The notes under the pieces were generated by a model that worked only from the letters and a program-made list of their open reading frames with translations, had not been told where the DNA came from and searched no databases. A program made the position numbers and the translations under genes. Below are positions 2,050-21,154 of a stretch of DNA of 21,154 nt, one piece after another. The stretch is from Octopus sinensis (lineage: Eukaryota): assembly GCF_006345805.1 (NCBI RefSeq), contig NW_021823797.1, forward strand, positions 1 through 21,154, written 5' to 3'. Numbering within the stretch: position 1 is the first letter of the stretch; the number at the start of each line of letters is the position of its first letter.

Positions 2050-4250
2050 TTATAACGAGAGCCTCGAATAGGCAGCAAACATATTTTTAGCGGAAAGTCC
2101 CCAAGTTCCGGCATTATATAGAAGTATTGGCTTCACTAGTGAATTGTATAGTCGTATCCGTGTTTTTGTGCTGAGTCCTTTGCGTTTTAGCCAATTTTCC
2201 TTTAAGCTGCGTAGTGCACTGTCTGCATGTGTTTTTTGCATAATCACGTCTTGTTCGTCTCCCAATAGAGATCCGAGTTTCTTTACTTTTCTCCAATGTT
2301 CGTCCAGCTTAGACTTCTGTCTTGCTAGTTCAGTAAATTCTGTTTTCTCCAAATTTACATTGAGGAACTACTCAGCAAGTCTATTTGGCATCACCTTTCG
2401 GAAGAAATAAAATCTACGTCATCCGCGTATGCCACCACATTGATCCGTTTCCTTCATCTATGGGTACACACGATATCAGAAGTCGATCTTCCTTCCCGAA
2501 ATCCGTTGTGAAAAGCGGATATAAATAGTTCGATGCGAGTTTTTATTCTTTCTAGCGTAATGATTGCAAGAACTTTTCGTATTCTATTCATAAAAATTAC
2601 TGGCCTCAGATTTTTTTACTTTTCCCTTAGCTTTGTTCGGTTTTTGGACAGGGACCAGTATCACTCGTCCAATGGGTAAATGGTTGTTTCTTTTAAACAT
2701 TCCGTTGAAGAGGTCCGCAATGAGGACATTTAGCTTTTCACTTCCATATTTGAGTAGCTCTGGTCCTAGTCCGTCTGGTCCTGGGCTTTTATTGTTTTTA
2801 AGCTTAGCATATGCTCTTTGCACTTCTGCAGAAGTTATTTCCAACTCCAATTTCATGGGATGCCCGATATATCCATAAATTCCTTTGCTGTTGGATCTAA
2901 ACAGTTTCTCCAAGTGGCCGGCGATTAGTCCTGCTAATTCTGTGGAATCTGCAATTCGTCTTTTATTTTTGTCATTTATGATTAGTGCTTGTCTGTGTTT
3001 ACGTCCTCGTAATAATCTGATCGCCTCATAATATCTTACATTGTCTTTCAAGGCTTCTCTGGCCTTGATCTGTATCTCAGCTTCCTTCCTTGACATATAG
3101 GACACGGACTTCTTGATCTTCTTCTTAATATTCGATCTTTCCCGACCAAGTTTTTCTTTGATGTGCTTGTCCTCCGTATTTTAATATTGTAGTCAAATAG
3201 ATTTTTGTTTCTTCACAAGGAGCGATATCTCAGTTGTTCCATTTGGTGATGTGGTAATCATTTCTGTATCCATGAGCTGTTTCTCCGCTGCTCCTCGTAT
3301 TGATTCTTGGATTTGTCCCCAGAGTTTGGGGAATGGTTGATTTGTTTCCACACTTCCCAAATACGTATCAAGTTATCTCCCTTTTGTTGTATTGAGAGTC
3401 CATTTAGGTCGAGTTTTCTTTTCCTAAGGATATCCTGCCTCCCTTTGATATTTGTTTTGTTTTTGTTTAGATGTTTATTCAGTGATATTCTTGCAATGAC
3501 CATTTTGTGGTCACTGTCAATGTTTGACCCACTATATGATCTTGCGTCAGTGAAAAGAGCTTTGTCTTTAGATCGACAGATTATATAATCTATCTGGTTA
3601 TAAATATTTATAAATTCGCCGGATAAATTCTTCCTAAACCCAGCCCAAGTAGTTTTGTGTCTTGCAGGGTGCATGAATGCAGTGTTGCAAATGACCGTTT
3701 GCCTGACAAAAATCGGCAAGTAATCTTCCTGCCACGTTCCTCATTCCCATCCCGTGTTTTCCCATAAAGGTTTCATCCGGCTTTCTTCGTAATCCCACTT
3801 TGGCGTTAAGGTCGCCAGCAATGACGAGTGATTGACGAGTGAACAAGTTCAGAATAAGCTTCAGACAGGCAAGAGTAGAACAAGTCTATCTCAGTGGGGT
3901 CTTTTTCAATCCATCCACTGTGGGGTGGGTATACGTTTATAATGGATAGTAAGCTTTTAGATAGGCAAAGCTTATTCATGCTAATCTGAAGTACACAAAT
4001 CCGATCATTTATGCTTCAACCATAGGTTTCAATTCCTTTTTATTACAAATCCTTGGCCAAAGTGTCTGCATTCACTTCGGAATGAGATGAAGTGATAGCC
4101 CGACAGTTCCTCTTAATTCCCCATGCAGTTTTGTCTCGTGTAAACATCCAAGAGAGACTGTATCTTTACAGATCTTTGCACAATGTTTTTCTTTTCCAAG
4201 ATTTAGCGATTCCTTTAACATTAAACGAGAGTAGCAAAAAAGGTGTTAGT
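2050..4250 (-). mobile_element. RTE-like LINE copy 1 (APE endonuclease + RT), degenerate, with an internal RT deletion
   Basis: APE motifs: FNVKG (~4220), IINVY.P (~3935), LVIAGDLNAKVG, TW...NQIDYII, SDHKMV. RT motifs: KSPGPDGLGPELLKYG, RPVIF...GFREGRSTSD (2460-2610), VVAYADDVDF (~2410-2440), IRLYNSLVKPILLYNAGTWGL. RT domains 3-4 are missing at the ~2458 junction. Confidence 0.9.
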
Positions 4251-4556
4251 TTCCTGTGCTTTTTAGACTCTATCTTTAAAAAACCACATCACAAGTTCAA
4301 ATAAAAAGACGACATAATGTTAATTAATCAAGGACAGAGGAAATGATCTTCACTTGTTCTTTATTTTTTGTTTCTCTTCGAAAATACTATTAAATACTGT
4401 AGTTTAAAAGAGAAATTAGAAATTTAAGATATTTTATATTAATTGTTAAAAAATTAGACTAACTTAAGTAATTTATATCACAATAATCAGGGATTTTTCC
4501 CGACAGTATAATGAATATATTTATTTAATAATTCAAATTAACTCACTCTAGTTGTG

Positions 4557-7285
4557 ATGCGGCAAAATAAATTTTTTGACACGTTGCAAGGAACTAGTTT
4601 CAAAGGCACGTCTAATTCCGTACTAAATAAACATTAAAATAATTACAAGGAAGAACTGGAATCTCGAATTCTTGGATTTCAAAACCAAAAACTCTCCGAG
4701 GCCCTCAAATATGCCAAAAATCAAGACTTTAGACAAAAAAGCAAAATCGCTGTTTTTGCAGAAAGAAGAGAAACCGATGAGGCACTTTTTGCACTTATAA
4801 ACCGACATTGGAACCAAGTTAATCCCACTTAGTCACACTTAGCACAATATTGAAGTACGCAGCCTCATTGAACATTATAACTGTGATTCCTTCGAGAATA
4901 TTCCACCGGATGGTACCCATCTGCTTTTAGTTGTAGAAACTGAATCACTCAAAGTGTTTCAGAGAAAAATATCGACAATGGAGACTGAAGAACTCGAGAA
5001 GGAATTTCAAAGGCGTGTTGAATATTCGAATACTTTAATGCTTATCCTTCATCAGGTCTTCGAAGGGTTTCCTATATATATCAAAGATCATAGACTGGTG
5101 ACTAAACTGGACAAATTAACCACGTTTTACAACACTCTTAAAGAATCCCCCGACAGTGCTATTCAAGAGAACCTTAAACTTCTCTCAGCTGATTTGGTCA
5201 CACAACTTACTAATGAAAATGTCTGTCTAAACAACCAACTGATCAAAGTAAACAAACAAAACAGTGGACTATTCTATAAGGTTAATCCTACTGAGTTATT
5301 ACGTAATAGCTTAATGAAACGGATGATAATTTGACTATTGAAATTAATTCAGCTGCAGAAAATAAACGGAAATTGGATGAACTGAACTATGAATTTGCCA
5401 TGCTTGAAAAATATTCAATAAAACTCGAGGAATCTTTAAAACAATCACAACAAGACATTTCTAAAATATCCACAGAGACAAAGGACATTAATCCTCCTCA
5501 GGAGCCCACTAACCCACAGCTCAGTACAGAAGATATGACAGAACTACAACAACTACGTCTGGAAGAACACAATCTTAGACATTTAAATGACTCTCGTCTG
5601 CAGGAATTGGAAACAATGCAGAAAGAGATTGACAGGCTGACTGTGTTAGTGGAGAGTGGGAATGAGAGAGTGGACTATCCAGACTTGTCTGTCGAGTTGT
5701 CATCAGTGAAAAGACAGCTTTCCACCTGCATTTCTGACTTGGCAAGAGTGAAGGCCAGACTGACAGAAAGCAACGAATTGAATTATATTCTTAAAGTAGC
5801 AATTCAGCAGATTAAAGATGATTTAAAAATCGGGAAAGAAATATCAGAGAGTCAGAAGGTGGAGGATATTATTAGGCTGACTGAACAACTAGCAGGCAAA
5901 GAAAAGGAATTAGAACTGGTTAAGCTGGAGAATGAGCAATATGCTTTAATAAAAGAACACACGAATGACGTCCACAGAGAAATGAGACATCTTATAAATA
6001 GTCTGCAGGCATTTAATAAGCAATTGAAGAATAAAAATAATAAATATCACATTAAACTAAATGAAACTCTCAGAAATAACGAGGTTAGTTACTAATGTGA
6101 CACCACTAGATCAATCTACCTGATTTTGCCGGGTATTTTATTACTAATTAATTAACTAATTATTATAGAACAGAATTACATATTTTTGAAGAATTTGAGG
6201 TTTATAGTTATTAGTTTATTGATAGTATTCATTGGGAACAATCAGCGAGTTGGACAAGGCTAGGGACCTTTGTTCAGAACTAATAAGAAGACTGAAGGAA
6301 TCAAGTGAGAACGAAAAGAGTCTACAAAGATGTATAAACCAGCATAGAATTACCAACGAAGACATTAAACGTAAACTGACGTGGCATAAACAGGTAAACT
6401 TGGTTATTTGGAGCCACTTTAAGCAAGAAGATACTCTAATGCAGGAAATGGAAGTGACAGGCCAAGCTTTAGAAGATATGCAGGAGAGGAATCGAGTTCT
6501 AATAGACCAGTTGACTGCAAAAGAGCAAGCCTATGTGGGACTGTTAGCCGAAGTATTAATTTGTTATGAAACATTGAAGAGAATAAAGCATAGACATGTC
6601 ATTGATGAGCTCAACAAGGAGAAGGAGGAGTGGAGACAACAGGAGGGACTACTTCGGAATCAGTTGGACACAACAATCCACATTAGTTCACAATTGGAAG
6701 AAAAGGAGAGTTCATTAACAAGACTATTGACTAATCTTGAAAGCGAGTGCAAGTTGAAGAGGCTTATTTGGAGTGTAGACTGAGAGATGATCGAATTGAG
6801 CTGAGTGGTCGTCGATACTCGGAAGTGCTGCAAAAGTGTGATGAGTTCAAAATAATATCTGACTCACATTACGACCAGTTGAAGGACTCACAACGATTAT
6901 TGCAGGAGAAGAGTAAACTGGTGAGAGACGGGCATTTCCGTGAGAGAAGATATGAGGTTGTTATGATTTGTCATTTTTGTTAGGAGGAGATTGATGGATT
7001 GAAGAGAAAGTTGGCCAAGATATCAAAGTTGAGGGGAGTGGAGGGAGACAGTATGTTGTTGGATGAGATTAAGGAACTGAAGGTAGTCGAATGTGAGGGA
7101 ATGTTTAGGACAGACTGACATGTCCGTGTTGTAATATTCATAGGAAGAATGCAGTGCTGACAACCTGCTTTCATGTGTTTTGTTTGGAGTGCTTGACTCA
7201 CCTATATCAGACGAGGAAAAGGAAATGTCCTAAATGTAATGCTTCTTTTGATGTGAATGAGTTTAAACGTATTTGGTTTGATTGA
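4557..7285 (+). CDS. BRE1: E3 ubiquitin ligase BRE1 (RNF20/RNF40 family), multi-exon, about 798 aa
   Basis: Exons: 4557-4619, 4650-4817, 4843-4912, 4937-5280, 5310-6083, 6110-6132, 6169-6199, 6226-6393, 6424-6552, 6580-6752, 6779-6956, 6984-7082, 7109-7285. All introns are GT-AG with consistent phases (4913-4936 is optional because it is in-frame and stopless). N-terminus [15 protein letters not shown]...[16 protein letters not shown]; core [17 protein letters not shown]; C-terminal [32 protein letters not shown]...[12 protein letters not shown]. All match BRE1 family motifs as I recall them. Confidence 0.95.
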
Positions 7286-7689: not shown

Positions 7690-8700
7690 TTAAGACTACG
7701 CAGGTTAGGGCGCCCTCCCAGCCTCACGGATTGCGAAGCAGTTGCCACGGATTACGGCAATGGAGAGGCGTTGAAGAAGCCAAAAGGACTCTCTCGGGTC
7801 GTCCCTCCTTTTGGAGATTCTTCTCCCCAAACTGCGTAGGAAACAAAGCGACTTGCGGCCGAAGACCCCAGAGGTCTCAATGGCGATGAGCGTGAAAACG
7901 AAGCTGGAGAGATGACCGTATTTCAGGATTTTGAGATCTTCAGCGCGATTGGAAGCAAAGCCTGGGTCGACGGCCGACCTGGCTAGGTTCCCGTTGGAGA
8001 ATGTGTCACAGCAAGTAGAATCCCATATAAGGAATTTTCCCTCTCAAAGGGGAATGTAGTTAAGCCGTCAGGAGAGGGGATGTAACCCGAACTCGTCCAC
8101 AGTTCCGCCACAGCGACATTTATGGGTCTGACAAATTTTGTGTTGGTTAAGTATCGGAGTGAGTTTTTCGTACAAAGACCGACATACAATTTTGTCCCAC
8201 TGGCGCTGGTTGTCCTCGGACTCAGGCCGCCTCGAATCAAACCGGGCCTACCATAAGAGACCTGCCGCGATGAAGTCTGCAGACACTTTCTGTTCGGGAA
8301 GGTTTCGGAGAACGATGTCTGAGAGAGTGCGCAAGGCAGAATGAGAGGACAGATAAGCCGGAAGAGCCAAATCGGAACAGTATCTCAGACCAAGCCCACC
8401 CCAGCGCACAGGTAAGGTCGCTTGAGACCAGCCAGAATCGTCGAAAGCAAGATTGCATAGGGAGTTCATACCAAGCTTAAGGATGTAATCGAAATCAGAT
8501 ATGAGGTCACTTCTGTGGAAACAGGGTGCACATCTTAGCGTATAAGGACCTTGGGGACAGAAAAGTGATTTCGCAGAAGGAAAAATGCGACGTGGGCCTC
8601 GATGTTTTTAAGCCTCTCGATCATTTTAGAAAGATTCGAAATTTTTTCCGAAAATGAAGCTTCTAGGGCGGAAAGACACATGGGAGCCCCAATGATAAAG
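7690..8700 (-). mobile_element. CRE-clade non-LTR retrotransposon, 3' part (post-RT to REL endonuclease), degenerate
   Basis: IGAPM, RLKNIEAHVAFFLLRNHFSVPK, WSQATLPVRWGGLGLR, AEDLKILKY...IAIETSGVFG...FLRSLGRRI...RESFWLLQRLSIAVIRGN. Confidence 0.8.
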
Positions 8701-8745
8701 GAAGTATAAACTAAAAAAGAAGGCTAAAAAATTGTTTTAATAGAT

Positions 8746-9331
8746 CATTATTTCTTCAGGTCAATTAATTTTTATGACTAAAAAATTATTTATTCGTTTG
8801 AATATTTAATTAATTTTATTTCACGTTTTTTTGTTATTTGATTGTAATGGTTAATCGCAAATGGATTGATTCTTATGTCCAATATGGATTTACCAAATAT
8901 ACTGGATCTGAAAACGTGCATAAAGCGCAGTCCATGATATGCGACGTCATAATGGGAAACAACTTTTTGAAGCTGTCACAATTAAAATGACATAAGGAAA
9001 AAACTCACAAAATGTTGAAACTGTCAAAAGTTTTATTGCTATCTTATGTAAAAATGCACTGGAAGTGATAATTCCTTTCCAACCACTTATTTATGTGAAA
9101 TGGAAATGTCTTGTTATTCTGAAAAGTAAAGTTTGTAGCCGACTTAAGCTGGAAGACGATATGAGAATGGCACTTATTAACATTGTACCAAAAATTGAAC
9201 AGCTAGTTTCTGAAAAGCAGAATCAAAAATCACACTAACTCTAAATACTATGATTTTTTAATTTTGTTAGTTTTTTTATTAAATTGTTTTGTTACTGGTG
9301 GTCCCCGGTAAAAAAAGGTTAAGAAACACTG
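8746..9331 (+). mobile_element. Internally deleted Buster-type hAT (586 bp)
   Basis: Right TIR ggttaagaaacactg (9317-9331); degenerate left TIR cattatttcttcagg at 8746. 8-bp TSD taatagat (8738-8745) / taatagac (9332-9339) with central TA. A BED-finger N-terminus (RKWIDSYVQYGFTK...MIC...SQLK.HKEKTH) is joined to a hATC C-terminus (FPTTYLCEM...RLKLEDDMRMALINIVPKIEQL). Confidence 0.85.
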
Positions 9332-9399
9332 TAATAGACAGAAAGCTCTATTTTCAAGATTCTTTATTTAATCACAGGCTTGTTATTGCCTTGACTAAC

Positions 9400-9730
9400 T
9401 CACACGAGATGCAAACAATTGCGGAAGAGAGGCTGAAAAATTAAACGACATTTTCATGAGTCATGGCCCTTGCTGATATATACACTCTGATAAGTTATCT
9501 GTTATCAGTGATAACAGAATTCAGAAATACGGTGCACCGTCATATCTTTGCCCCGATCGCAGTGGAGACGTCGGGAGTCCTCGGTCCCATAAGTAAAAAA
9601 TTCCTTATTAAACTGGGGGACCTGGCAAGCAGAAGGAGAAATAATCATCGGAAACGAACATGGTTTTTCCAACGAATATCAATAGCCATCTTGATGGAAT
9701 TTCCATTCCATCTTATCCTCTGCTGCTAAT
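9400..9730 (+). mobile_element. CRE-clade 3' fragment
   Basis: FAPIAVETSGVLGP...FLIKLG...WFFQRISIAI in ORF 9463-9729. Confidence 0.7.
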
Positions 9731-9759
9731 TAAATAAATTCTAATCAATTTACTTATTA

Positions 9760-10060
9760 ATACTTACGACAATTGAATTCAAAAATATTCACATTTCTAA
9801 TTTATGTAAAGAATTCAAAATTACTCATGGAAGGCCGAACAATCAGGGGATATTTGAACGATTTGATCGGAGAATTACAAGGTTTTTATCCAAATTGATG
9901 GCCTCGGATGATAAACAAGAGTGGATAAAACACATTCGAAAGGGTGTATTTTTATGCAATCAGAGCTCATTCGTCCACTTGTAAATTGCATTTTTATTTT
10001 CTAGGCGCTAATCCACTTCAAAGATATCGTGGTATTCCTGGATTTAACATTGTTGCTGAA
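9760..10060 (+). mobile_element. DDE (rve) integrase fragment, Ginger/gypsy-like, with a probable 24-nt intron
   Basis: EFKNIHISNLCKEFKITHGRPNNQGIFERFDRRITRFLSKL...EWIKHI. After one frameshift, RAHSST|CANPLQRYRG spans GT-AG 9981-10004. Confidence 0.7.
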
Positions 10061-10199
10061 TCAGATGTTGAGAAAAATTTAAAAAGTTCTGATATAGTAG
10101 AATTGGAAGTGTAGAAAACCCTGAAATTTAGAATAAACGTTTTTTATTGCTATTTATTAAAAGATGATGACTAACTGTTTAATTCTGAGAGGATAATTT

Positions 10200-10900
10200 G
10201 CATGAATAGGAAGATGGGAGTCCATCAATCAAAATATGAATTTATGACCTCCTTGCAAACGAGCTAAGGCGGATACACCAGTGCAAAGTCAATGCCATTC
10301 CGTGTGTGATGAAATGGGATAGACTGGTCACCAAATACCACAAGCGGTACAGCTAAGTGTAGATAAGTCTCTACAGGCTTATATACAGTCAACTGTTCTT
10401 AAGAGAACTGTGGAGAGTGTCTCGTTTGATGCTCGCCGATTCAGCCCTTTCCTGGCGCTGGACTGCACCTTCTCGAAGGTCTAAAGTGCCAAAGAAGAGG
10501 AGGAAGAAAGGGAGGAGGTGCGTGGAGTGCCATCCTCTGTTCACTTCTGGACTTGGAAAATTATTTAGATAATTAGTTTCTTTTTTATTTCTGACAATCA
10601 TCAACATTGATGGATCGCTTGCAGCGCTTGATCACTATCTGCGCTCTCGACAAAATATGTTTTAAATATCTTCTTGTTCTCCTGGAATGACAGTAAGCGT
10701 CCAGATGGAACGACTATCCTTCTTTTTCGGGAAGAAAAGTCCCTCGTGTAGGATGGCACCTGCATCGACTCTTTTTCTGGACGATCCTACCTAAGACTCT
10801 CAGCAACCCGGGCTCTGGTTCTCCTCATGCTGAAGAGTCAAAAAAATGACTATGTATTTCGAATAGAACAGCTGTGCCACGCACAACAGCCAATAAGATC
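10200..10900 (+). mobile_element. CRE-clade fragment including the REL nuclease motif
   Basis: GAWSAILCSLL (~10515-10550), AALDHYLRS, KRPDGTTILLF...LV*DGTCIDSF (RPDG...WD.TC.D), PGSGSPHAEESKK. The left boundary is weakly supported. Confidence 0.65.
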
Positions 10901-11033
10901 GTTTGGATTAGGAAAATAAATTTTCTAGTATCTTTAGAGCATAATGAACAGAGGCAGCCAGATTTTGTTGAGATAATTTTAGACTGCAGGCCAACATGTA
11001 TCTAGCCAATTTTAATCAACACTTATTTTTTGT

Positions 11034-11037
11034 AAAA
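11034..11037 (-). terminator. Pol III T-tract downstream of the tRNA
   Basis: TTTT on the minus strand, 6 nt past the tRNA 3' end. Confidence 0.5.
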
Positions 11038-11043
11038 CTTAAA

Positions 11044-11117
11044 TGCCCCGACAGGGACTCGAACCCTAGACCTTCGCGTTATTAGCACGACGCTCTAACC
11101 AACTGAGCTACCGGGGC
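11044..11117 (-). tRNA. trnI-AAT: tRNA-Ile(AAT), eukaryotic type, no intron
   Basis: Reverse complement GCCCCGGTAGCTCAGTTGGTTAGAGCGTCGTGCTAATAACGCGAAGGTCTAGGGTTCGAGTCCCTGTCGGGGCA (74 nt). Acceptor stem, D arm, anticodon arm TCGTG-CTAATAA-CGCGA and GGTTCGA T-arm are intact; no encoded CCA. Confidence 0.97.
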
Positions 11118-11959
11118 ATTTTTATATGACAAATCTATAAAAAAAAAACTTTTACACTTTATATATTTTATAAAAGATTTCAATTTGCATCAAACTAAAA
11201 GGAACTTTTTTGGAATAGCTTTTCCTGCACCGATACTTTAGATTTTAATTAATGAAAGCTTTGATCAGGTTGACAAGTTACGCCGTCACAAATATTTTAT
11301 TTCAGGTGGATTTCCATATGAATTAATGTATTTCTAATGGAATGTAATGTGCCTTCCTCTATCTATCATCTGTACTCCAATAAAAAAAACATTAAAGACA
11401 AAAAAGAATTGGATCATATCTTAATTCGTTTTAAAATTGAATAATTAATTTAAATGTTTTTTCTCTAGCTCTTATAAACAAATGGTGTGTTTGGCACACA
11501 CGAAACCTTAAGCGTTTAGCGTTTATAGCAACGCAGATGTGATAGTTGTTGTCTATTTCTAGTGACACTTGACTCTATTCTCAATAACAATTAAGTTAGT
11601 TTATACTGATTTTACAGTATTTTAAAACTTTGAATTAATTTTCAGACCATTTCCCTTGATTTCAATTTCTAAAATTTATAATACATTTTATAATTCCAAA
11701 GTTCTGATTAAATCGGAAAATATAAGCGGAACAATAAAAACCAATTTATTTTGTTGGAATGGTAATTGAAGACGGTTTTCGTTGATTCCTTTAAAGTTCA
11801 GTATGAGGGGTATTTGATTGTACTTTTAAGCATGATCTTGACAAGAATCATCATTAATTAACCGAGACTGGCAAATATATTGCGAGGATTCGGCAGTCAT
11901 TTACCAACTAAATGTTTGAAAACGCAAATCTAAATCACTAGCATCACTATTCATGAATG

Positions 11960-12340
11960 ATTGTTAGTTGTATAAACATCCTGTATATAAGTATGTAAAT
12001 AAATCGTAAAATCAACTGCATGCTTTTACTGATGCAGTGTGCGTTGCCGCGAACAATGGCCAGACAGATGCGCTGGCGGGACCAGAGGCCCTCTCTCGGG
12101 TCCTTAATCCTCCTCCCAATGGACTGCCCGAACTCTTTGAGGAATGAGTCGGTCTCCTTTCCCGCGGCTGCAGCGGTCTCCAGTGCGATTGGCGTAACAC
12201 GGTAGCGGTCCGCGAGGGAAGAATATTTTTGTAGTTTCATCTTTTCGGCGTGGTTTCCAGCCGAACAAGATTTAGCAGCGGAAGAATGGATCCTCGACTT
12301 TGAGAAGGTATCCACAACGGTAACATCCCATACAAATTAA
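11960..12340 (-). mobile_element. CRE-clade 3' fragment
   Basis: WDVTVVDTFS...HAEKMKLQKY...PIALET...FLKEFG..IGRRIKDPREGLWSRQRICLAIVRGNA. Confidence 0.85.
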
Positions 12341-12860: not shown

Positions 12861-13338
12861 TCCTCTGCAGGTTTAGTGAAGACATGAATAACAGAAAAAG
12901 ACTAATTCTGACTATTAAACTGCCACAATAAAGGAGTTCCTTGATCAAATATCAGTGCAGATTGAGAGTAGTCGGGTAGTGATTGCTAATTATTTTGTAG
13001 AATCATCAGAGAGGAGCTGTTTTTAGGTATTGAAAATTTTTCGTAATTCTTTGAGATGTTATTTCGAAAATGGAAGGTTGCTCTAATATCACATAGAGGT
13101 CCAATGATTATCTAATGGAAATGTTTTTTCAAGGATGCACAAATTGTAGAATAAAAGTTTTTAATATTTTCTTCTTGAAAATAAGCATTTGATTGGACCG
13201 GACTTCTATTTTATTTAACCAACATTTTTTGCAAATTAATGTTTTGAATTTATCGGTATCAAGAAAAGAGCACAATTGTTGCTTTTTTAAAAATAAACAA
13301 GGCAGGAAAAAATTAAATGTTGTAGGCCGTTCCTTTAG

Positions 13339-13475
13339 CCTAACTTCAACCTTATCACTATCCCTAACCTTATCCCTAACCCTATCCCCAACCTTATCCC
13401 TATCCCTGACACCAACCTATCCTTAACCATTATTTTAACACAAGCCCCAACCCTAATCTATCTCCAACTTTAATC
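13339..13475. repeat. Degenerate hexamer array (CCTAAC/CCTATC/CTTATC), resembling the C-strand of (TTAGGG)n
   Basis: About 22 units in 6-nt register: cctaac ttcaac cttatc actatc cctaac cttatc cctaac cctatc cccaac cttatc cctatc cctgac... Confidence 0.8.
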
Positions 13476-13502
13476 ATAAAATAATGATTCTTAGATTAGC
13501 CT

Positions 13503-13520
13503 AAGTTCCGGCATTATATA
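13503..13520 (-). mobile_element. 18-bp left remnant of RTE LINE copy 2, ending in the TA target site
   Basis: aagttccggcattatata is identical to 2103-2120 and directly abuts the left Tc1 TIR. Confidence 0.85.
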
Positions 13521-13547
13521 CACTTCATGTAAAAAAAACGGATTTTC
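13521..13547 (+). repeat. Tc1 left outer TIR
   Basis: cacttcatgtaaaaaaaacggattttc versus right-end reverse complement cactccatgtaataaaaaaccggattttc (1 mismatch, 2 single-base indels). Confidence 0.85.
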
Positions 13548-13654
13548 GAATGCTTAATTTTTTGATATTCTGTTTTTATTTTAGACTTTTTTTAATTTAT
13601 AATGATAATCTTCGTAACATTTTTTTTTATATATTTTTCAATAATCTTTTTGTA

Positions 13655-13671
13655 CAGCTAAAGTTTAGCTG
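13655..13671. other. hAT hairpin (P-nucleotide) footprint / left target-site remnant
   Basis: cagctaaa-g-tttagctg. This equals the target site agctaaac (19136-19143) minus its last base, followed by the reverse complement of cagctaaac. Confidence 0.75.
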
Positions 13672-13917
13672 AGGGCAAAGAAGAGAAAATATGAAGCGCT
13701 GCGAGACCGATTCGTGTTCCGATTGTGGTCGAGACAACTGGAGGATAAGTGGGAAATCGCTTCACTTCTAAAGAACCTTGGACGCTTAGTCACATTAAAA
13801 AGCCACAACACACGTGAGACCCGGTGGCTTCTCCAGTTGATCTCCGTTGCTATCGTGAGAGGCAACGCAACGTCAATTATGTTGGCGGGGTCCACTTCGG
13901 ATGGATGGCTTTATTAA
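13668..13917 (+). mobile_element. CRE-clade 3' fragment inside the composite
   Basis: AE.KKRKYEALRDRFVF.PIVVETTGG...LLKNLGR...RETRWLLQLISVAIVRGNA, with frameshifts. Confidence 0.8.
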
Positions 13918-13929
13918 CTTCTAGTAAAT

Positions 13930-13980
13930 TACAATTAATTAATTAATTGTATTGCGTATTTATTATCGTAATAAATACGC
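13930..13980. repeat. 22-bp perfect palindrome plus a 12-bp-stem hairpin
   Basis: tacaattaattaattaattgta (13930-13951); gcgtatttatta-tcg-taataaatacgc (13954-13980). Confidence 0.8.
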
Positions 13981-14019
13981 CTTTATTAAAAAAAGCCATA
14001 TATAATAAAACAAAGAAAA

Positions 14020-16412
14020 ATTTCAGTAACGATAAAAAAGAACTAAGGCGGAGACAATATAATGTTTCTGAAAAGCTTGCAAGAGCTGTGGAGGCAAGCA
14101 CATCGGTGGATTTTCACACTGACCAACCATACGTCGAAAAAATGGGTAGGTCTGCAATTCTCACTTCATTGATAATAAAATAGTGCCAGATAATACTGAA
14201 TAAAATCATTCTTCCCCATTTTATAAAAAAACGAAGTTGTATATTACCCAGATTACAAATGGGGGACCTGTCTCCGACATGAACTTCCATAACTCTTCAC
14301 AAACAGAGCTTCAAGACTTTTTTTGGCAGAAATGATTTTGAATGCCTGATATGCAGAGTCTTGATTTTTCAGTAGAAAGGACAATAGAAAATATCATAAA
14401 CTAATTCTGGACATTGACCTTCAGCAAATAGTCAAGGGCATCATTTGGTCTCCCACATTTAAAAATAGTAATTCCATGCAGTCGAAAACTGAAAGGATCA
14501 CGGTGAAGTAAATTTAATATATTCAGTGCAGAAGTGTACTCCCCAATGTTGTACAAGCCAATAAATCCGTTAATAATTCGCATTGATTAGTGCCCGGATA
14601 TGAGACCAAAGAAGAAATATATTCTCCAGTCATTCTCAAATCGACAAGGCTTCTCTTGCGTTAAATATAACCGCACAATCAAGGCTGGATAGTTGTTCGG
14701 GGCGGAGAGAAAATACGTCGTTCTTTTCTGAGATGTGCTGTAAAGCAATTTTATTGCCGATCATCTGATGTTTGAAATCCATAATTCATGAACGACCCAA
14801 GTAGAGACTGAGCCATTGCATCGTTGGGTCGAGCCTCCAAATAATAAAAAAGACCTTCAATGGCCTTGGTGACTTGATCCTCTGGAGATGAATCCTTAGT
14901 GATATTACAAGACGGAATATTTTTTTTCCATTCTGAAAACAGGATATCGAACACTATTTTGTCGCCACGTGCACAGCAAAAAATCGATATGTAAAAATTG
15001 ATGGATTGAAGCCATTAATAGCTACCATCAAATGCTTGTCAATTCCATCAAAAATTTCCCAATGATCTGAAGTGCCCGCTTTCATTAGAAGAATTTTTAA
15101 CATAATTTCACTATCCCGAGAAAATGAAACATTCTTGGACATTTCAATGACACGAAAGGAGTGCTCATAATCCTCACATGTGTAATAAAGTACAGCCAAA
15201 TTGACAAATGCACGTTCGTTGTGTTGAGAAGCATCAATTGACTTGAAAAATGATTTTTCAGCGAGAACGTAATCCTTGAAAAAGTAAGCAACAGTCCCCA
15301 AAAGAAGCCACGAATCAGAACTCCCACCACTCTCAAACAGAGGAGACTGCACAACCCACGGACAAATCACGGGCACTCTCATTTCCATTAATTCTCCAAA
15401 GAAATGAGGCAGCCAAAGCACAGTTATAAAACGCAGAACACAGCCTGGTCATAATGGCCAAATGACCAAAGGCCCAAATACTCAACTTGACGTATGTCTG
15501 AAGAGTTTCATGGCCAGGAGGAGAATCGGGGTGGAAACATAGCTGGGAAAGACGAAAGGCAGAATAACCAAATAAAAACAGAACTATTTTCTGATCTCTG
15601 CTTTCCTGGGATAAAAAACAACGGAGACTGTCGAAAGCAATTGTATAAATGTCAAAAGCTTCCAAAAAACGATTTTCTGATAACAAATCGTCTCCGAAAT
15701 AGCACATAACTTCAGCATAAAGGACTTTAAAAATCGTCAAATCTTCCGATTCTTCGTTGGTTGAATTCAGCAATTCTTCGAGGGTTGAGGCGATCTCTTC
15801 AAAGTCCCCGCTTTTAAAGGAAGAGATTGTAATAATCAGTTTAACTAAAAGCCTCCATTGGGGCATGTCTTGAGACTTTTCGAGAAAAGATTTGTGGTTA
15901 AAAGTCAGACTCATTCCACTGAGTCGAATCAGTTCTGTTCTCAACATTACAAAAATGAAACAATCTTTGTCAATGTCGATTGCTAGGTCACAAATCCGCA
16001 GAGATTGGGAGTATTCTCCATTGCACATGTAAAATATTGCCAGTCTGCGGAGTGCGGGGATCATTGCTGGAGAAAGATCACTTCGCATGAAATTTTGAAG
16101 GTATTTTTGACTTGAATCTTTGTTTAGTAGACCGAACTACTTCCTGGTAGGCAATGGCATTTCTGGTACTAAGGAATCGAGAATGTAGGCTCTTTCATAG
16201 CAAGAATAAGCACGGTTTGAATCGTTCATGAAATATTGGAAAAAATCTCCAAATTTTAAGAAAATTTGAGCATTCTTTGGAACTAATTTGACTGCTTCTA
16301 AAAAACAGGAAAAAGCAGAATAGAGTCCTTCAGTTGTGTCTTTGTAGCAGTGTGAGTAGGCACGGGTTGTGTACATTTCGGCATTTTTTAAATTCAATGT
16401 TTCAGAATCCAT
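14020..16412 (-). pseudogene. SKI3: SKI3/TTC37 (SKIC3) TPR-protein copy, lacking the N-terminal TPRs and frameshifted
   Basis: Segments match TTC37 as I recall it, in the same order: CFLEAVKL...FLKFGDFFQYFMNDSNRAYSCYERAYILD; ALRRLAIFYMCNGEYSQS; SWLLLGTVA...LAEKSFFKSI...AFVNLAVLYY; YYLEARPNDAMAQSLLG; TGEY. Probable 30-nt intron at 16140-16111. Frame changes near 14955, 14780, 14640 and 14585 have no fitting GT-AG intron. The 3' boundary is approximate. Confidence 0.82.
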
Positions 16413-16710
16413 ATTTGTAGCCAGCTCTTTCGTTATTTATTTTATTTTATTTAGGATAATATGTTATGAAAATATAACCATAAATATGTAAAAAAAATAA
16501 TTAAATAGATTTTCCAATATTTTGATTAATAAAAATTAAATTTTGGCATAAAAACTACTTGTTTTAACAAATCTGACAATTTTGTAAAAATTTTAAGAAT
16601 CTGCTTTTCCGAATTTACATTGAGAGGAGTTTCTAATAATTAGCAGACAACCTGAAAACCTACGAGAAGCCCTGAATTGCATACTTTGATGCAAAATAAT
16701 TAGGGGCTAT

Positions 16711-16862
16711 TGTTTATTATTCCTCCTTACTGAAATCATTTTTCAAGTCAATTGATGCTTCCCAACACAACGAACGTGCATTTGTCAATTTGGCTGTACT
16801 TTATTACACATGTGAGGATTATGAGCATAATGAAATGCTTTCCGTGTTTATTATTCCTCCTT
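16711..16862 (+). repeat. Templated insertion: inverted 95-bp SKI3 copy flanked by an 18-bp direct repeat
   Basis: 16733-16827 is the reverse complement of 15162-15256 (94/95). tgtttattattcctcctt occurs at 16711-16728 and 16845-16862. Confidence 0.92.
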
Positions 16863-17032
16863 TACAAATTCGTAGATGTTTTCCAAAATGCTTCACTAGG
16901 AAGAAATGTCTGAACAAATTAGATCGAAAACAAATAAAATTGACTTAGCTATCTTTAATTTCTTTCTTACAAAAAAATAAATAAATAAAATTGATATCAA
17001 ATAATAAAATTTAATGAATTCCTTTATCGATT

Positions 17033-17108
17033 TTATTAAAATTAACAATAATCTATATATTTAATAAGATTCGTTATTAAAATTAACAATAATCTATATA
17101 TTTAATAA
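17033..17108. repeat. 35-bp tandem duplication (period 41)
   Basis: ttattaaaattaacaataatctatatatttaataa at 17033-17067 and 17074-17108. Confidence 0.92.
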
Positions 17109-19135
17109 ATGAAAATATTTTTAACAACGTTTGGATTCGCTAAATTCATTGCCCCAAATAATGAAATAAAGGCAAAATGCATGATTTGCCATAGAATTTT
17201 GGGAAACAATTCACTGAAACCTTCTCAACTTAGGCGCCACAAAGAGTCTGTACACCCAGAAAATTTTTCCTCACATGAATATTTTAAAGTCAAAAGAACG
17301 AAGTTTGATTCACAGCCAAAGCTTGAGTGGTTTAATAAATCTCAAGATAAACCGAGATTAGAAGCATCATATGCTGTAATTTTAATTTATCTAAAACAAA
17401 TAGGTCTCAATGATTATCGCAAAAAACAAAGCTGCACATAATTCTGGTGAAAAGTTATCAAACCAGCGGCTCTTGAAATGGCTCGAATTTTGTTTGGTCC
17501 GGATGCAGTTACCAAACTTAAGGACATACCATTATCCAACGATTCAATTTCCCGTAGAATTTCAGAATTGTCATCTGATATCCTGAAGCAATTAATTGAA
17601 AGAATCAATAAAAGTAAATGCAGAATAAGTATTCAATTGGACGAGTCAACTGACATTTCTAACGTCTGTCAGCTTGTGTCCTATGTTCGCTTTGTTGATG
17701 ATGAGAATATTATTGATGAGTTTTTATTTTGTTTGGAGATGGATGGACACACTCGTGGAGAGGACATCTTTAATATTTTTGACAATTTTATGAAGACGAA
17801 TAAAATCCAATGGGATAAAGTTGGATCTATATGTACTGATGGTGCACCTGCGATGATTGGTCATCAATCTGGACTTGTTACTCGTATTAAGGATTTGGTT
17901 CCTGATATTGTTACAAGACATTGTGCATTGCACAAATATGCACTTTGTTCAAAAACTATGTGTTCGTCGTTAAGAGAAACACTAAACACTATTGTAAAAG
18001 TGATAAACTATATTCGATCTCGACCACTTAATCATCGAATTTTCCAAACTCTTTGTGAAGAGTAGGAAGTGATCATTCTATACTACTTTATCATTCTGAA
18101 ATTAGGTGGCTTTCAAGGGGAAAAATCCTTTCGAGAATTTGTGAACTTTCCCCTGCGATCTCTTTGTTTTTGCGTGATAATATGCAGCATGATTGGGCCG
18201 ATCAATTCGATGATTTTACTTTTAAATCGAAAATGTATTATCTTGCCGATTTTTTTAACATTTTAAATGAGTTTAATTTGTCAATGCAGGGTAAAAATTT
18301 TATTAATTTATTTAAAGGTCTTATATATCAGTTGTCGAGGTCAATCAAATAATAATGGCTTTTAAAAAAAAGTTATTATTGTGGATAATGAAAATAAAAA
18401 AAGGAATAACATCAATGTTCCCAATGCTTGAATATCATCTCGGACACAACCCCGGATAATGTTCTTCTAAGTCTGATAATCAAACATCTGGAAAATCTCA
18501 AGACAAAATTTGATGATTATTTTCCTGTTGAAGACCCAATTCCAAACTGGATCGTTCAACCTTTCTTGACCTCATTTAAAGAATATCAGGAACTCAATTT
18601 TCAGCAGAGCTTGATTGAACTTCAATGTAATCAGTCTGCTCAGATTATTTTCAAATGTACTTCATTATTAGATTTTTGGTATTCTCATTAATAATTACTT
18701 TTTATTGTTAGGTGTCGATGGCGAAAGAATTCCCCATTTTGAGTAAAACTGCATTGGAATCAATACTTGCATTCCCCACTACTTATCACTGTGAAATGGC
18801 GATGTCGTGTCTGACTTTTCTAAAAACAAAATATAGAAATAGACTACGGGTACAAGATGATATGCGAGTAGCTTTGTCGAACATAGAGCCTGATATAGTA
18901 AAATTATTCTGAGCAAACAAGATCAGAAATCTCACTAAAACTATTAAATTTTCTGTTATTTTCATAATGTTCATGTTATTTTTATAATAAATATTCGAAC
19001 ATGTCTAAACCTGGCCCTGACGAGGCCAAAAATTGTGCGCTAATACCAAAAAATGTTTATTTTATTTAAGGTGGTCCCCACAAAATTTTATAGTGCAAAA
19101 GTGGTCCCCAGTCTAAAAAAGGTTGAGAACCGCTG
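17109..19135 (+). mobile_element. Buster-type (ZBED5/SCAND3-like) hAT, transposase pseudogene; right TIR present, left TIR not found
   Basis: BED finger (FGF...AKCMICHRILGNNSLKPSQLRRHKESVH); core PLSNDSISRRI...IQLDESTD...CTDGAPAM...RHCALH; hATC FPTTYHCE...KTKYRNRL. Right TIR ggttgagaaccgctg (19121-19135) is followed by agctaaac. Stops and frameshifts; candidate introns at 17376-17403, 18291-18317 and 18679-18711. Confidence 0.95.
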
Positions 19136-19164
19136 AGCTAAACTGACTATATTAAATTTTTTCT

Positions 19165-19183
19165 GTGTAAAAAAAACCGGATT
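19165..19183 (+). repeat. Tc1 left inner direct repeat
   Basis: gtgtaaaaaaaaccggatt repeats the core of the outer TIR. Confidence 0.75.
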
Positions 19184-19200
19184 AGAAAAAAGTCAAATGA

Positions 19201-20210
19201 TTAATAATTAATGTGTCCTCCATGTGCCTTATAAAGCTCAATGCTTCTTCTTGGCATGCTTTCAGTTAATTTTCTCACAAATTCCATTGGTATTTAGTCC
19301 CAAATTTTTATGATATTTTCGCATAAATCCTTTTTACTGTGCAGCATTTTTTTACTCAATTCTTCCTTTATGTAGCTCCACACATGTTCAATTGGGTTCA
19401 AATCTGGTGATTGTGGTGCCCAATTTAATAATTCAATTTTTTCTCATCCAAAAATTGTTTTGTTCTCCGTGAATTATGACAGGAGGCCAAATCTTGTTTG
19501 AAAATAAAACGATTTAGCCCCATTTTATCTGCCGATTTCCACAAATTATTTATTAAAATGTTGATATATACAGCAGAATTTATTTTTCATTTACTATAAC
19601 CAAATTCCCCTTTCCATGATAGGAGATACAACCCCATACCATAATTGTTCCACCACCAAACTTCAAAGTTGGCGTTAAATGGGGATAATTTAAGGCTTTA
19701 TTTTGTTTCTAAAGCAAAATTTTCTTTTTTTAGATGAAAAAATTTCAAAGGAAGCCTTGTCACTCTATATAACAGTTCTCCACGTTTCATTGCTTATTGC
19801 AGAAAAGATTATTAAAAGCTCGTATTGTTTTTCACTATTTTTTTTGATAAAAAAAGTTTTCTTTTACACACACATGCTTTGTAATGAATTTCATGTAGAT
19901 AATTGCTTATTGTTTTTTTGCAGACAACTTTTCCTGTAAAATCGAAGACTTCTTTCAGGTTGGCAAGTGTTTTTTTTGGATTTTCTTTCACAATGTTGAC
20001 AAGTTTACAAATATCTAAGTTAGAGAGCTTTTTGGGTCTTCCAGAACCAGGTATACGATCAACAGTCCCTTTTTTATTTAACTTATTCAGAAAATCATTG
20101 AGAGTCGAAGTTAGAATATTCAGCTCCTCAACAATCTTTTTTTGTGTCCAATTTAATTGAATGAGAGCTAGGATCTTTCCTTTAGTGATTTTATCAAGCA
20201 TTTTTTTCAA
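19201..20210 (-). pseudogene. Tc1 (DD34E) transposase pseudogene
   Basis: HTH and GSGRPKKL N-terminus (ORF 19812-20210), then WRTVIYSDK, FKQDLASCH, LLNWAPQSPDLNPIEHVW and ESMPRR...AHGGH across stops and frameshifts. Confidence 0.95.
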
Positions 20211-20249
20211 ATACCTAAAAATTGGCTTAGCAACAGACTAATCAAAAAA

Positions 20250-20269
20250 AATCCGGTTTTTTAATACAC
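20250..20269 (-). repeat. Tc1 right inner direct repeat
   Basis: Reverse complement gtgtattaaaaaaccggatt. Confidence 0.75.
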
Positions 20270-20408
20270 GCTAAGATTTTATCAAGATCAATTATTCAAA
20301 TATACATTATAATTTTAAAAATAGTAAAAAGATACAACAAACGATTGCTGAAAAGTAATTTAAAAATTGATATACATTTAAAAAATACTAGTAAAAACAT
20401 GCAAACTT

Positions 20409-20437
20409 GAAAATCCGGTTTTTTATTACATGGAGTG
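20409..20437 (-). repeat. Tc1 right outer TIR
   Basis: gaaaatccggttttttattacatggagtg, followed by TA and LINE sequence. Confidence 0.88.
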
Positions 20438-20439
20438 TA

Positions 20440-21000
20440 GAAGTATTGGCTTCACTAGTGAATTGTATAGTCTTATCCGTGTTTTTGTGCTGAATCCTTT
20501 GCGTTTTAGCCAATTTTCCTTTAAGCTGCGTAGTGCACTGTTTGCATGTGTTTTTCGCATAATCTTCGTCTTCCAATAGAGATCCGAGTTTCTTTACTTT
20601 TCTCCAATGTTCGTCCAGCTTAGACTTCTGTCTTGCTAGTTCAGTAAATTCTGTTTTCTCCAAATTTACATTGAGGAACCACTCAGCAAGTCTATTTGGC
20701 ATCACCTTTCGGAAGAAATAAAATCCACGTCATCCGCGTATGCCACCACATTGATCCGTTTCCTTCATAGTATGGTTTTAGTTCTTTCAATGCAGCTTCC
20801 AGATATATGACAAACAGTATAGGAGATAACGGATCCCCTTGAGATGTTCCAGATGTTGTTTCAAATGGTTTAGAGCACTTGTCTCGTACCCTGACCGATA
20901 GATAGGTTTCTGATAAGAGTGCCCTGATCATCCGGATAGAAGATTCATCAAGGGATTCATTGACATATCGATGCCAAGAATGTATGTCGCATTTTTGACT
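20440..21000 (-). mobile_element. RTE-like LINE copy 2 (RT domains 3-7 region)
   Basis: 20440-20768 is nearly identical to 2121-2457 (about 7 substitutions and one 8-nt indel by eye). Further upstream it has GIDMS and GTSQGDPLSPILFVIYLE, which copy 1 lacks. Confidence 0.92.
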
Positions 21001-21154
21001 CGCTCTCCCAGAAGGACAAGACGGTTCAGTGTGCCACTACGATGAATTGCCGGAGCCGTGGTTCACCGCCACGCGCTTCCGGCTATTCTAGTGGTGTCTT
21101 TTATTTTCTAGGCGAAAGCAGGAAGGAGAAGTCGAAGCCTGGACCCTCCCAGGT

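Follow-up and report, generated by a model that had tools for sequence, protein, structure and literature searches.

In a window of 21,154 nucleotides from Octopus sinensis (the whole stretch of contig NW_021823797.1 that was analysed; assembly GCF_006345805.1), a Buster-type hAT transposon nested in a Tc1-like transposon has lost its left end and is separated from its former target on that side by kilobases of foreign, partly genic filler. The junction between the Tc1-like element and this filler fits, base for base, the scar expected of an opened hAT flank hairpin, an assignment that is well supported by the letters of the junction and of the target duplication at the opposite end of the hAT, and we infer that a transposase hairpin was the maker of the palindrome found there. 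The whole succession, namely a Tc1-like carrier, a nested hAT, a break at the left hAT end, an opened hairpin and rejoining across filler, is in our judgement probable. The boundaries of the elements, the empty site of the carrier, the truncation of the hAT, the remnant of its target duplication and the palindrome are observed directly.

The carrier is a Tc1-like IR/DR element on the minus strand at 13521-20437, with TA on both sides (13519-13520 and 20438-20439). Its parts, flank and empty site are the following:

2103-2153: paralogous empty site of the Tc1-like element, within another copy of the LINE family that it entered
13503-13520: left flank, LINE-derived AAGTTCCGGCATTATATA, ending in the TA duplication at 13519-13520; an identical 18-mer stands at 2103-2120
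13521-13662, minus strand: outer part of one long inverted repeat, with the outer transposase-binding repeat at 13521-13547; ends in AGCTAAA
19136-20437, minus strand: remaining Tc1-like sequence, with inner repeats at 19165-19183 and about 20250-20269 and the outer repeat at 20409-20437

The transposase is decayed, with an HTH open reading frame left intact at 19815-20237 (HTH_Tnp_Tc3_2, E=1.4e-13), and at either end about 166-170 nt separate the outer repeat from the inner one. The TA duplication, the two binding repeats per inverted repeat and the Tc1-type HTH place the element among the Tc1/mariner IR/DR transposons; its DDE domain is decayed. The right flank (TAGAAGTATTGG..., 35 nt from 20438) matches the window from 2119 onward, and both flanks (18 nt on the left, 35 nt on the right) are joined at 2103-2153 with one TA shared. 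This paralogous empty site indicates that both Tc1 ends derive from one insertion and hence that everything between them lies inside the Tc1-like element; the hAT is thereby enclosed in it, as an earlier note on this DNA had held.

The two copies of the LINE family, both on the minus strand (2053-4015 and 20438-21036), are 95.6% identical over 339 nt, and the one that serves as the empty site (2053-4015) has lost most of its reverse transcriptase by internal deletion. To the left of the Tc1-like element, LINE homology ends after 18-24 nt (13497-13503) and the paralogue runs on for at least 200 nt, from which it follows that the 142-nt Tc1 stub has a second, unexplained breakpoint some 160 nt away from the scar. 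A degenerate telomere-like tract of about 150 nt (CCCTAA / CCTTAT variants) at 13331-13460 is bracketed by TTAGCCTAA(C/G)TTC direct repeats (13335-13347 and 13496-13508), in the manner of a small insertion with a target duplication.

Nested in this carrier are the remains of the hAT and the target copy at its right end:

17124-19135, plus strand: 5'-truncated Buster-type hAT, with a BED zinc finger, transposase remnants and the right TIR at 19121-19135
19136-19143: AGCTAAAC, the 8-bp hAT target duplication in its intact right copy, with TA at positions 4-5

The 204-aa open reading frame of the hAT (17451-18062) matches 'protein ZBED8-like, partial [Octopus sinensis]' at 99% identity; lower-scoring relatives bear ZBED5-, SCAND3- and FAM200-like names, and the precomputed Pfam assignments of the hits are PF14291 and PF27073. 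At locus L001 (GCA_006345805.1, VCDQ01013302.1), positions 9719-11738 match window positions 17130-19140 at 98.3%; the full copy there occupies 9389-11734, starts with CAGCGGTTCTCAACC, possesses both TIRs and is flanked on both sides by the target duplication GGCTATAC. Homology of the window hAT to this copy begins only at about 17124, and neither a left TIR nor the subterminal GTGGTCCCC motifs occur anywhere to the left of it, which together imply a loss of about 324 bp that took away the TIR, the subterminal region and the opening dozen codons. The idea that the 5' end is divergent and not truncated was rejected, neither TIR nor GTGGTCCCC motif being present on that side. About 2.0 kb of the element is still present, with right TIR and target duplication intact. 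The named relatives, together with the TA at positions 4-5 of both known target duplications (AGCTAAAC and GGCTATAC), support the Buster-type assignment, and it was on the same ZBED8-, ZBED5- and SCAND3-like relatives and the central TA that an earlier assignment to this type was upheld. The target consensus of TcBuster is nnnTAnnn (PMC3499496).

The left TIR and subterminal region of the L001 copy are tandemly duplicated over about 125 bp (9389-9630), with an inner TIR-like sequence at about 9514. In the window, a second, related and internally deleted hAT-like element lies at 8724-9331; it retains about 55 N-terminal codons from 8847 and about 80 C-terminal codons at 8996-9235, ends in the right TIR CAGTGTTTCTTAACC (9317-9331, minus) with the flank TAATAGAC, lacks a recognisable left TIR and adjoins a retroelement copy (7708-8723, minus).

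The evidence that carries our reading lies at the left junction, where the Tc1 stub meets the filler:

13655-13671, no strand: palindrome CAGCTAAA-G-TTTAGCTG, in which 13663-13671 would represent P-nucleotides left by the opening of a flank hairpin

Positions 13650-13679 read TGTAC AGCTAAA G TTTAGCTG AGGGCAAAG (the whole string being TGTACAGCTAAAGTTTAGCTGAGGGCAAAG) and contain this odd palindrome of 17 nt, with arms of 8 nt and a G in its centre. At the other end of the hAT, the right TIR GGTTGAGAACCGCTG is followed directly by AGCTAAAC. AGCTAAA occurs twice on the plus strand in the 21 kb, at 13656 and 19136, which are both of the predicted positions of the target duplication. An insertion at AGCTAAAC predicts a Tc1 stub ending in AGCTAAAC and followed by the hAT TIR; instead, the left remnant (13656-13662) keeps seven of the eight bases, the eighth, C, is replaced by its complement G (13663), and an inverted copy of the flank, TTTAGCTG, follows at 13664-13671. 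The left arm of the palindrome is the target copy itself, and its centre is the last base of that copy. An adjacent hAT with a TIR and an 8-bp target duplication, the complementary base and the inverted flank are the marks of a hAT flank-hairpin scar. The earlier note had taken AGCTAAAC behind the right TIR for an 8-bp target with a central TA and the AGCTAAA-G palindrome at the left edge of the cargo for the product of a flank hairpin; both strings read exactly so, the right target copy is intact, and the left boundary follows the prediction through seven target bases, the complement G and the inverted flank.

The scar argument has to rest on the position and content of the palindrome, because palindromes of such size are common here: with arms of at least 8 nt, the window has 5 of them against a Markov expectation of 1.3, L001 has 5 and the O. 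sinensis locus L002 has 2, about one per 4-5 kb, so that they are not rare in the octopus DNA examined. This abundance is what lends some credit to an account in which the palindrome arose by chance or is native to the Tc1-like element, and in which filler and truncation stem from ordinary deletion-plus-insertion (NHEJ or a mobile element) with no transposase hairpin; moreover, L002 and a further locus, L003, contain no other copy of the family that would display the native Tc1 sequence. A chance or native palindrome would nevertheless have to be built from the target copy, be centred on the exact base of the hAT nick and carry the complement of the missing target base. With the flank given, the exact scar string would follow over the next 9 bases with a chance of 4^-9 (our own arithmetic, for a site chosen after reading). 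Joining 13519-13662 to 19143 onward restores an inverted repeat that is colinear in length with three others, namely the element's own second inverted repeat and both inverted repeats of a related Tc1 in L002, and none of these three has a palindrome at the scar position; the inter-repeat region is variable and too poorly conserved to support CAGCTAAAC itself. The filler, for its part, shows neither ends nor a target duplication of any known mobile element. We therefore regard this account as unlikely.

The hairpin scar and its competitors make different predictions. If the scar is genuine, intact copies of the Tc1 family should read TTGTACAGCTAAACTGACTAT once and lack the palindrome; if the palindrome is native to the Tc1-like element, they should already read CAGCTAAAGTTTAGCTG; and if it came with the donor, it should stand upstream of GAGGGCAAAG at a Tc1-free locus. 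Comparison with L002 and L003 yielded the related Tc1 (72% identical) and other retroelement copies, and neither locus held a further copy of the Tc1 family, of the filler or of the fragment at 13669. A protein search with the HTH open reading frame gave one relative, at 54%. Scans for exact DNA matches to the Tc1 end sequences in viral, metagenome and prokaryote genome collections were empty, as was a metagenome protein scan, and an exact-protein look-up of one window open reading frame returned no match.

We propose the following order of events. A Tc1-like IR/DR transposon would have inserted into the TA of a LINE copy, and a Buster-type hAT would later have landed in its long inverted repeat, at a point flanked by the outer and the inner binding repeat, with duplication of AGCTAAAC. 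The hAT transposase may then have cut at the left hAT end with a nick one base into the flank, the 3'-OH of the flank closing a hairpin on the Tc1 side; because of the position of the nick, such a hairpin would lack the last top-strand base of the target duplication and bear its complement at the tip. Host enzymes opening it 9 nt from the tip would have converted ...CAGCTAAA into ...CAGCTAAA-G-TTTAGCTG, so that the scar would be a natural read-out of the hairpin-opening distance from the tip in this animal. The transposon-side end would have lost its TIR and about 324 bp, and the two ends would finally have been rejoined across 3.45 kb of filler, with a retroelement 3' fragment and a SKI3-like pseudogene lying tail to tail and short patches near the hAT. 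The hAT deletion and the filler presumably belong to the same repair event, and the filler may have arisen by error-prone synthesis with template switches, possibly annealing at GCTG, the data fitting either this or a ligation of fragments.

The note had envisaged the nested hAT as cut out and the result as gene capture into a transposon. Excision agrees with the scar at the left end only, since about 2.0 kb with the right TIR and target duplication remains. The result is a capture in layout only; the insert splits the left inverted repeat of the Tc1-like element, binding-repeat spacing matters for IR/DR elements, and any mobility of the composite is hypothetical. An intact right TIR and target duplication are at odds with a simple standard two-ended excision and leave either a one-ended cut on the left or full excision with partial re-copying from the sister chromatid, in which case synthesis could possibly have gone on to wander to other templates. 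The left end of Hermes is bound much more strongly than the right (PMC10368747), as would suit a left-only cut.

The filler, from 13672 to about 17123, is a patchwork between the scar and the truncated hAT. From left to right, and starting with the overlap at the scar, it comprises:

13668-14010, plus strand: 5'-truncated C-terminal fragment of a retroelement with its 3' tail; open frame 13669-13914, stop codon 13915-13917
14117-16436, minus strand: SKI3 (SKIC3/TTC37)-like pseudogene fragment with an in-frame stop at 16137-16139 and frameshifts; homology is supported over about 15120-16340
16437-16729: AT-rich filler with a LINE-like piece at 16605-16624 (18 of 20 positions match 2345-2364 and 20656-20675)
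16730-16827, plus strand: inverted copy (99%, 95 nt) of the SKI3 segment 15162-15256
16828-17123: AT-rich filler with a 35-nt unit at a 41-bp period (17033-17067 and 17074-17108), followed by the hAT junction at about 17118-17129

The retroelement family has four copies in the window, the paralogues of the scar fragment being at 7708-8607 (minus), 9510-9726 (plus) and 11950-12336 (minus), and at least four copies in L002. It is very abundant: L002 carries it at 3408-6449 and 11265-11802, with at least four truncated copies in 12 kb, near minisatellite arrays. Fuller copies carry CCHC..GDGKRPDG..WD.T..DT..AE.(R/K)K..KY, which we take to be restriction-like endonuclease motifs. The pieces gave no Pfam or PDB match, and no reverse transcriptase was found attached to them; the 'CRE' clade to which the fragment had been assigned is accordingly kept as the earlier reader's putative label. 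In six paralogues, Ala-Glu stands 7-8 residues before a conserved Lys-Tyr. At the scar, GCT GAG (13668-13673) fits this spacing only with a 2-nt deletion (frameshift) before AAG AGA AAA TAT; by our estimate, a fit like this would arise by chance in roughly 1 in 200-500 cases. It is thus plausible that the P tract and the retroelement share the 4 nt GCTG, and if they do, the donor should read as the retroelement up to GCTGAGGGCAAAG and differ from the scar leftward of GCTG.

For the SKI3-like segment, a stitched translation of 628 aa finds human SKIC3 (7qdr_B/9g8o_B) first in the PDB at E=1.6e-11, with designed TPR proteins ranking behind it, and is colinear with SKIC3 in two stretches, residues 473-635 and 811-895; against yeast Ski3 it gives E=0.036. 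This colinear similarity, extending beyond generic TPR repeats, identifies the segment as SKI3-like. Its 267-aa open reading frame alone found no relative in a 5.8-billion-protein index, a 1.84-billion representative library or the PDB, and, being unmatched even among O. sinensis proteins, the copy is not a recent duplicate of an annotated gene. Homology extends over about 1.2 kb with no intron, crosses one frameshift and adjoins the in-frame stop. The segment is therefore a pseudogene; the human SKIC3 gene has many exons, and by that comparison the pseudogene is probably a processed one. The earlier description of the cargo as CRE plus SKI3 over about 3.4 kb stands as regards a SKI3-like segment and a retroelement C-terminal fragment in about 3.45 kb; its choice of the parental SKI3 locus as donor fares less well, as the missing introns, the stop and the frameshifts make a processed pseudogene the likelier source.

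In the part of the filler next to the hAT, the inverted copy is flanked by 17-nt direct repeats GTTTATTATTCCTCCTT (16712-16728 and 16846-16862), and its source-side breakpoint lies within a native palindrome, TGAAAAATGATTTTTCA (15244-15260). This 95-nt patch, 99% identical to its source, is demonstrably templated from within the filler; for the main 2.8 kb, a templated origin is conjectural. Such an inverted self-copy and the tandem duplication are the kind of patches that error-prone repair synthesis with template switching would be expected to leave. TTAACAA occurs three times in 17033-17129 and is also found in the deleted part of the hAT (L001 9679-9685); a microhomology of up to 7 nt (TTAACAA) at the junction between filler and hAT is possible on these letters. 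A Helitron or other carrier for the filler was rejected, no matching ends having been found.

The same filler could be seen as a patch of reverse transcripts, in which a hAT break was filled by endonuclease-independent insertion of a retroelement, and possibly of a SKI3 cDNA, with GCTG as the microhomology of the 5' junction. Both main pieces invite the idea, the scar fragment being the 5'-truncated 3' end of a very abundant family (four copies in the window, at least four in L002) and the SKI3 segment being intronless over its 1.2 kb of colinear homology. Their arrangement tells against it: retroelement and SKI3 stand tail to tail, which is not a product of template jumping by a reverse transcriptase, the SKI3 piece is internal and has neither a 3' end nor poly(A), and the inverted self-copy and tandem duplication near the hAT look like DNA-templated switches. 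We hold this origin of the filler to be decidedly unlikely, and retain a hairpin-type break rejoined across filler as the preferred reading.

A further account treats the 3.45 kb as original local DNA, brought up to the Tc1 stub by a hAT-mediated rearrangement, that is, alternative transposition using the ends of two hAT copies, with their flank hairpins fused. The surroundings offer suitable material, in that the second hAT-like element (right TIR at 9317-9331) shares the orientation of the first and is found 8 kb to its left, three more retroelement copies just upstream could make the fragment at 13669 a local one, and the Tc1 stub is broken on its other side too. Alternative transposition, however, keeps both TIRs and creates a new target duplication, whereas the octopus hAT has no left TIR and begins within the coding region; we consider this account improbable. 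Mis-assembly of the contig at 13662, at about 17124 or at both would suit a TE-dense region, given that the related public assembly is a long-read draft and that sequencing errors could explain part of the frameshifts in SKI3 and hAT. Neither a palindrome built from the target duplication nor two Tc1 flanks matching one empty site would result from a collapse or chimera, and such an artefact is very hard to credit.

Set against known systems, the junction resembles the hairpin footprints of hAT elements (Ac/Ds, hobo, Hermes, Tol2 and TcBuster), in which, as here, the flank up to the last target base is followed by its complement and by bases complementary to the flank; P-nucleotides at V(D)J coding joints are the counterpart of such transposon flank-hairpin footprints. 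hAT elements form flank hairpins and are excised with a 1-nt 5' overhang (PMC6900584, PMC8151067). TcBuster, a Buster-type element like that of the octopus with an 8-bp nnnTAnnn target, has been reported to leave footprints in which some bases are the complement of the flank (PMC3499496). By the standard of typical footprints, the octopus P tract is long (9 nt, or 5 nt plus the 4-nt overlap) and the scar is present at one end only; the hAT is still there, and what adjoins the scar is kilobases of foreign DNA, not the other flank.

The repair side of the locus has precedents as well. Abortive gap repair is the origin of Ds-type deletion derivatives. Rubin & Levy in 1997 and Yan et al. in 1999 are said to have described abortive gap repair, or filler, at Ac/Ds and P-element excision sites. 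Filler DNA, occasionally genic, is known in Ac/Ds elements (PMC3260210). Abortive gap repair of Ac/Ds and the P element shares with the octopus locus the loss of element sequence on the side of the break, unrelated and partly genic filler, and short repeated or inverted patches. In the Ac/Ds cases, both TIRs are usually kept and the filler lies inside the element, whereas in the octopus the left TIR is lost and the filler lies between the hAT and the Tc1-like element; the filler is also unusually long in comparison with that of Ac/Ds and P elements.

Animal Pack-TIRs form a third point of comparison (Tan et al. 2021, PMC8277862): hAT and Tc1/mariner elements are their main carriers, most cases are single-copy, gap filling shows a median microhomology of 2 bp, and most single-copy cases are ascribed to breaks not involving transposition. 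The octopus locus has the same make-up, namely a TIR transposon with intact ends and a target duplication around a segment derived from a host gene, with the SKI3-like segment (matching SKIC3) inside the Tc1-like element. It differs from the surveyed cases in that its break bears a transposase signature, and one from another superfamily's element nested in the carrier.

Taken together, the locus matches what is known of abortive gap repair, filler DNA and Pack-TIR formation, and is a clean natural example of a mechanism that is already known; what is uncommon about it is that the break bears the mark of a nested element and not of the carrier itself. What causes the break before sequence capture by animal DNA transposons is debated, the largest survey (PMC8277862) leaning towards breaks unrelated to transposition. 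A locus that combines a transposase-type scar with captured DNA is a tangible instance of excision-type damage ending in capture on the kilobase scale, and its host is a cephalopod with recently active Buster elements (copies 98% identical); this is a single locus, and it changes no principle. If breaks by nested hATs in Tc1 inverted repeats were a general route for packing host gene fragments, with the composite or its relatives still moved by Tc1, one superfamily would load cargo into another and the Tc1 transposase would move the composite or its relatives, a generalization that we regard as highly doubtful.

Elsewhere in the window, a second odd-palindrome complex at 9487-9518 reads CTGATAA-G-TTATC-T-GTTATCA-G-TGATAACAGA. 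It lies exactly at the 5' edge of the retroelement fragment at 9510-9726, whose point of truncation is no more than 2-3 codons from that of the 13668 fragment. A retroelement-specific origin of junction palindromes, considered on account of this second one (9498-9518), was rejected, the copies in L002 having no such association. With no untemplated base needed, the complex can be read as a pair of opened flank hairpins on either side of a hAT, since lost, whose target was xTGATAAC, the left copy being CTGATAA and the right copy GTGATAAC, with the first base differing. A tRNA-Ile gene (anticodon AAT) lies at 11043-11118 (minus) in the midst of the retroelement cluster, and a run of long coiled-coil-like open frames resembling host-gene exons occupies 4843-6980 (plus).
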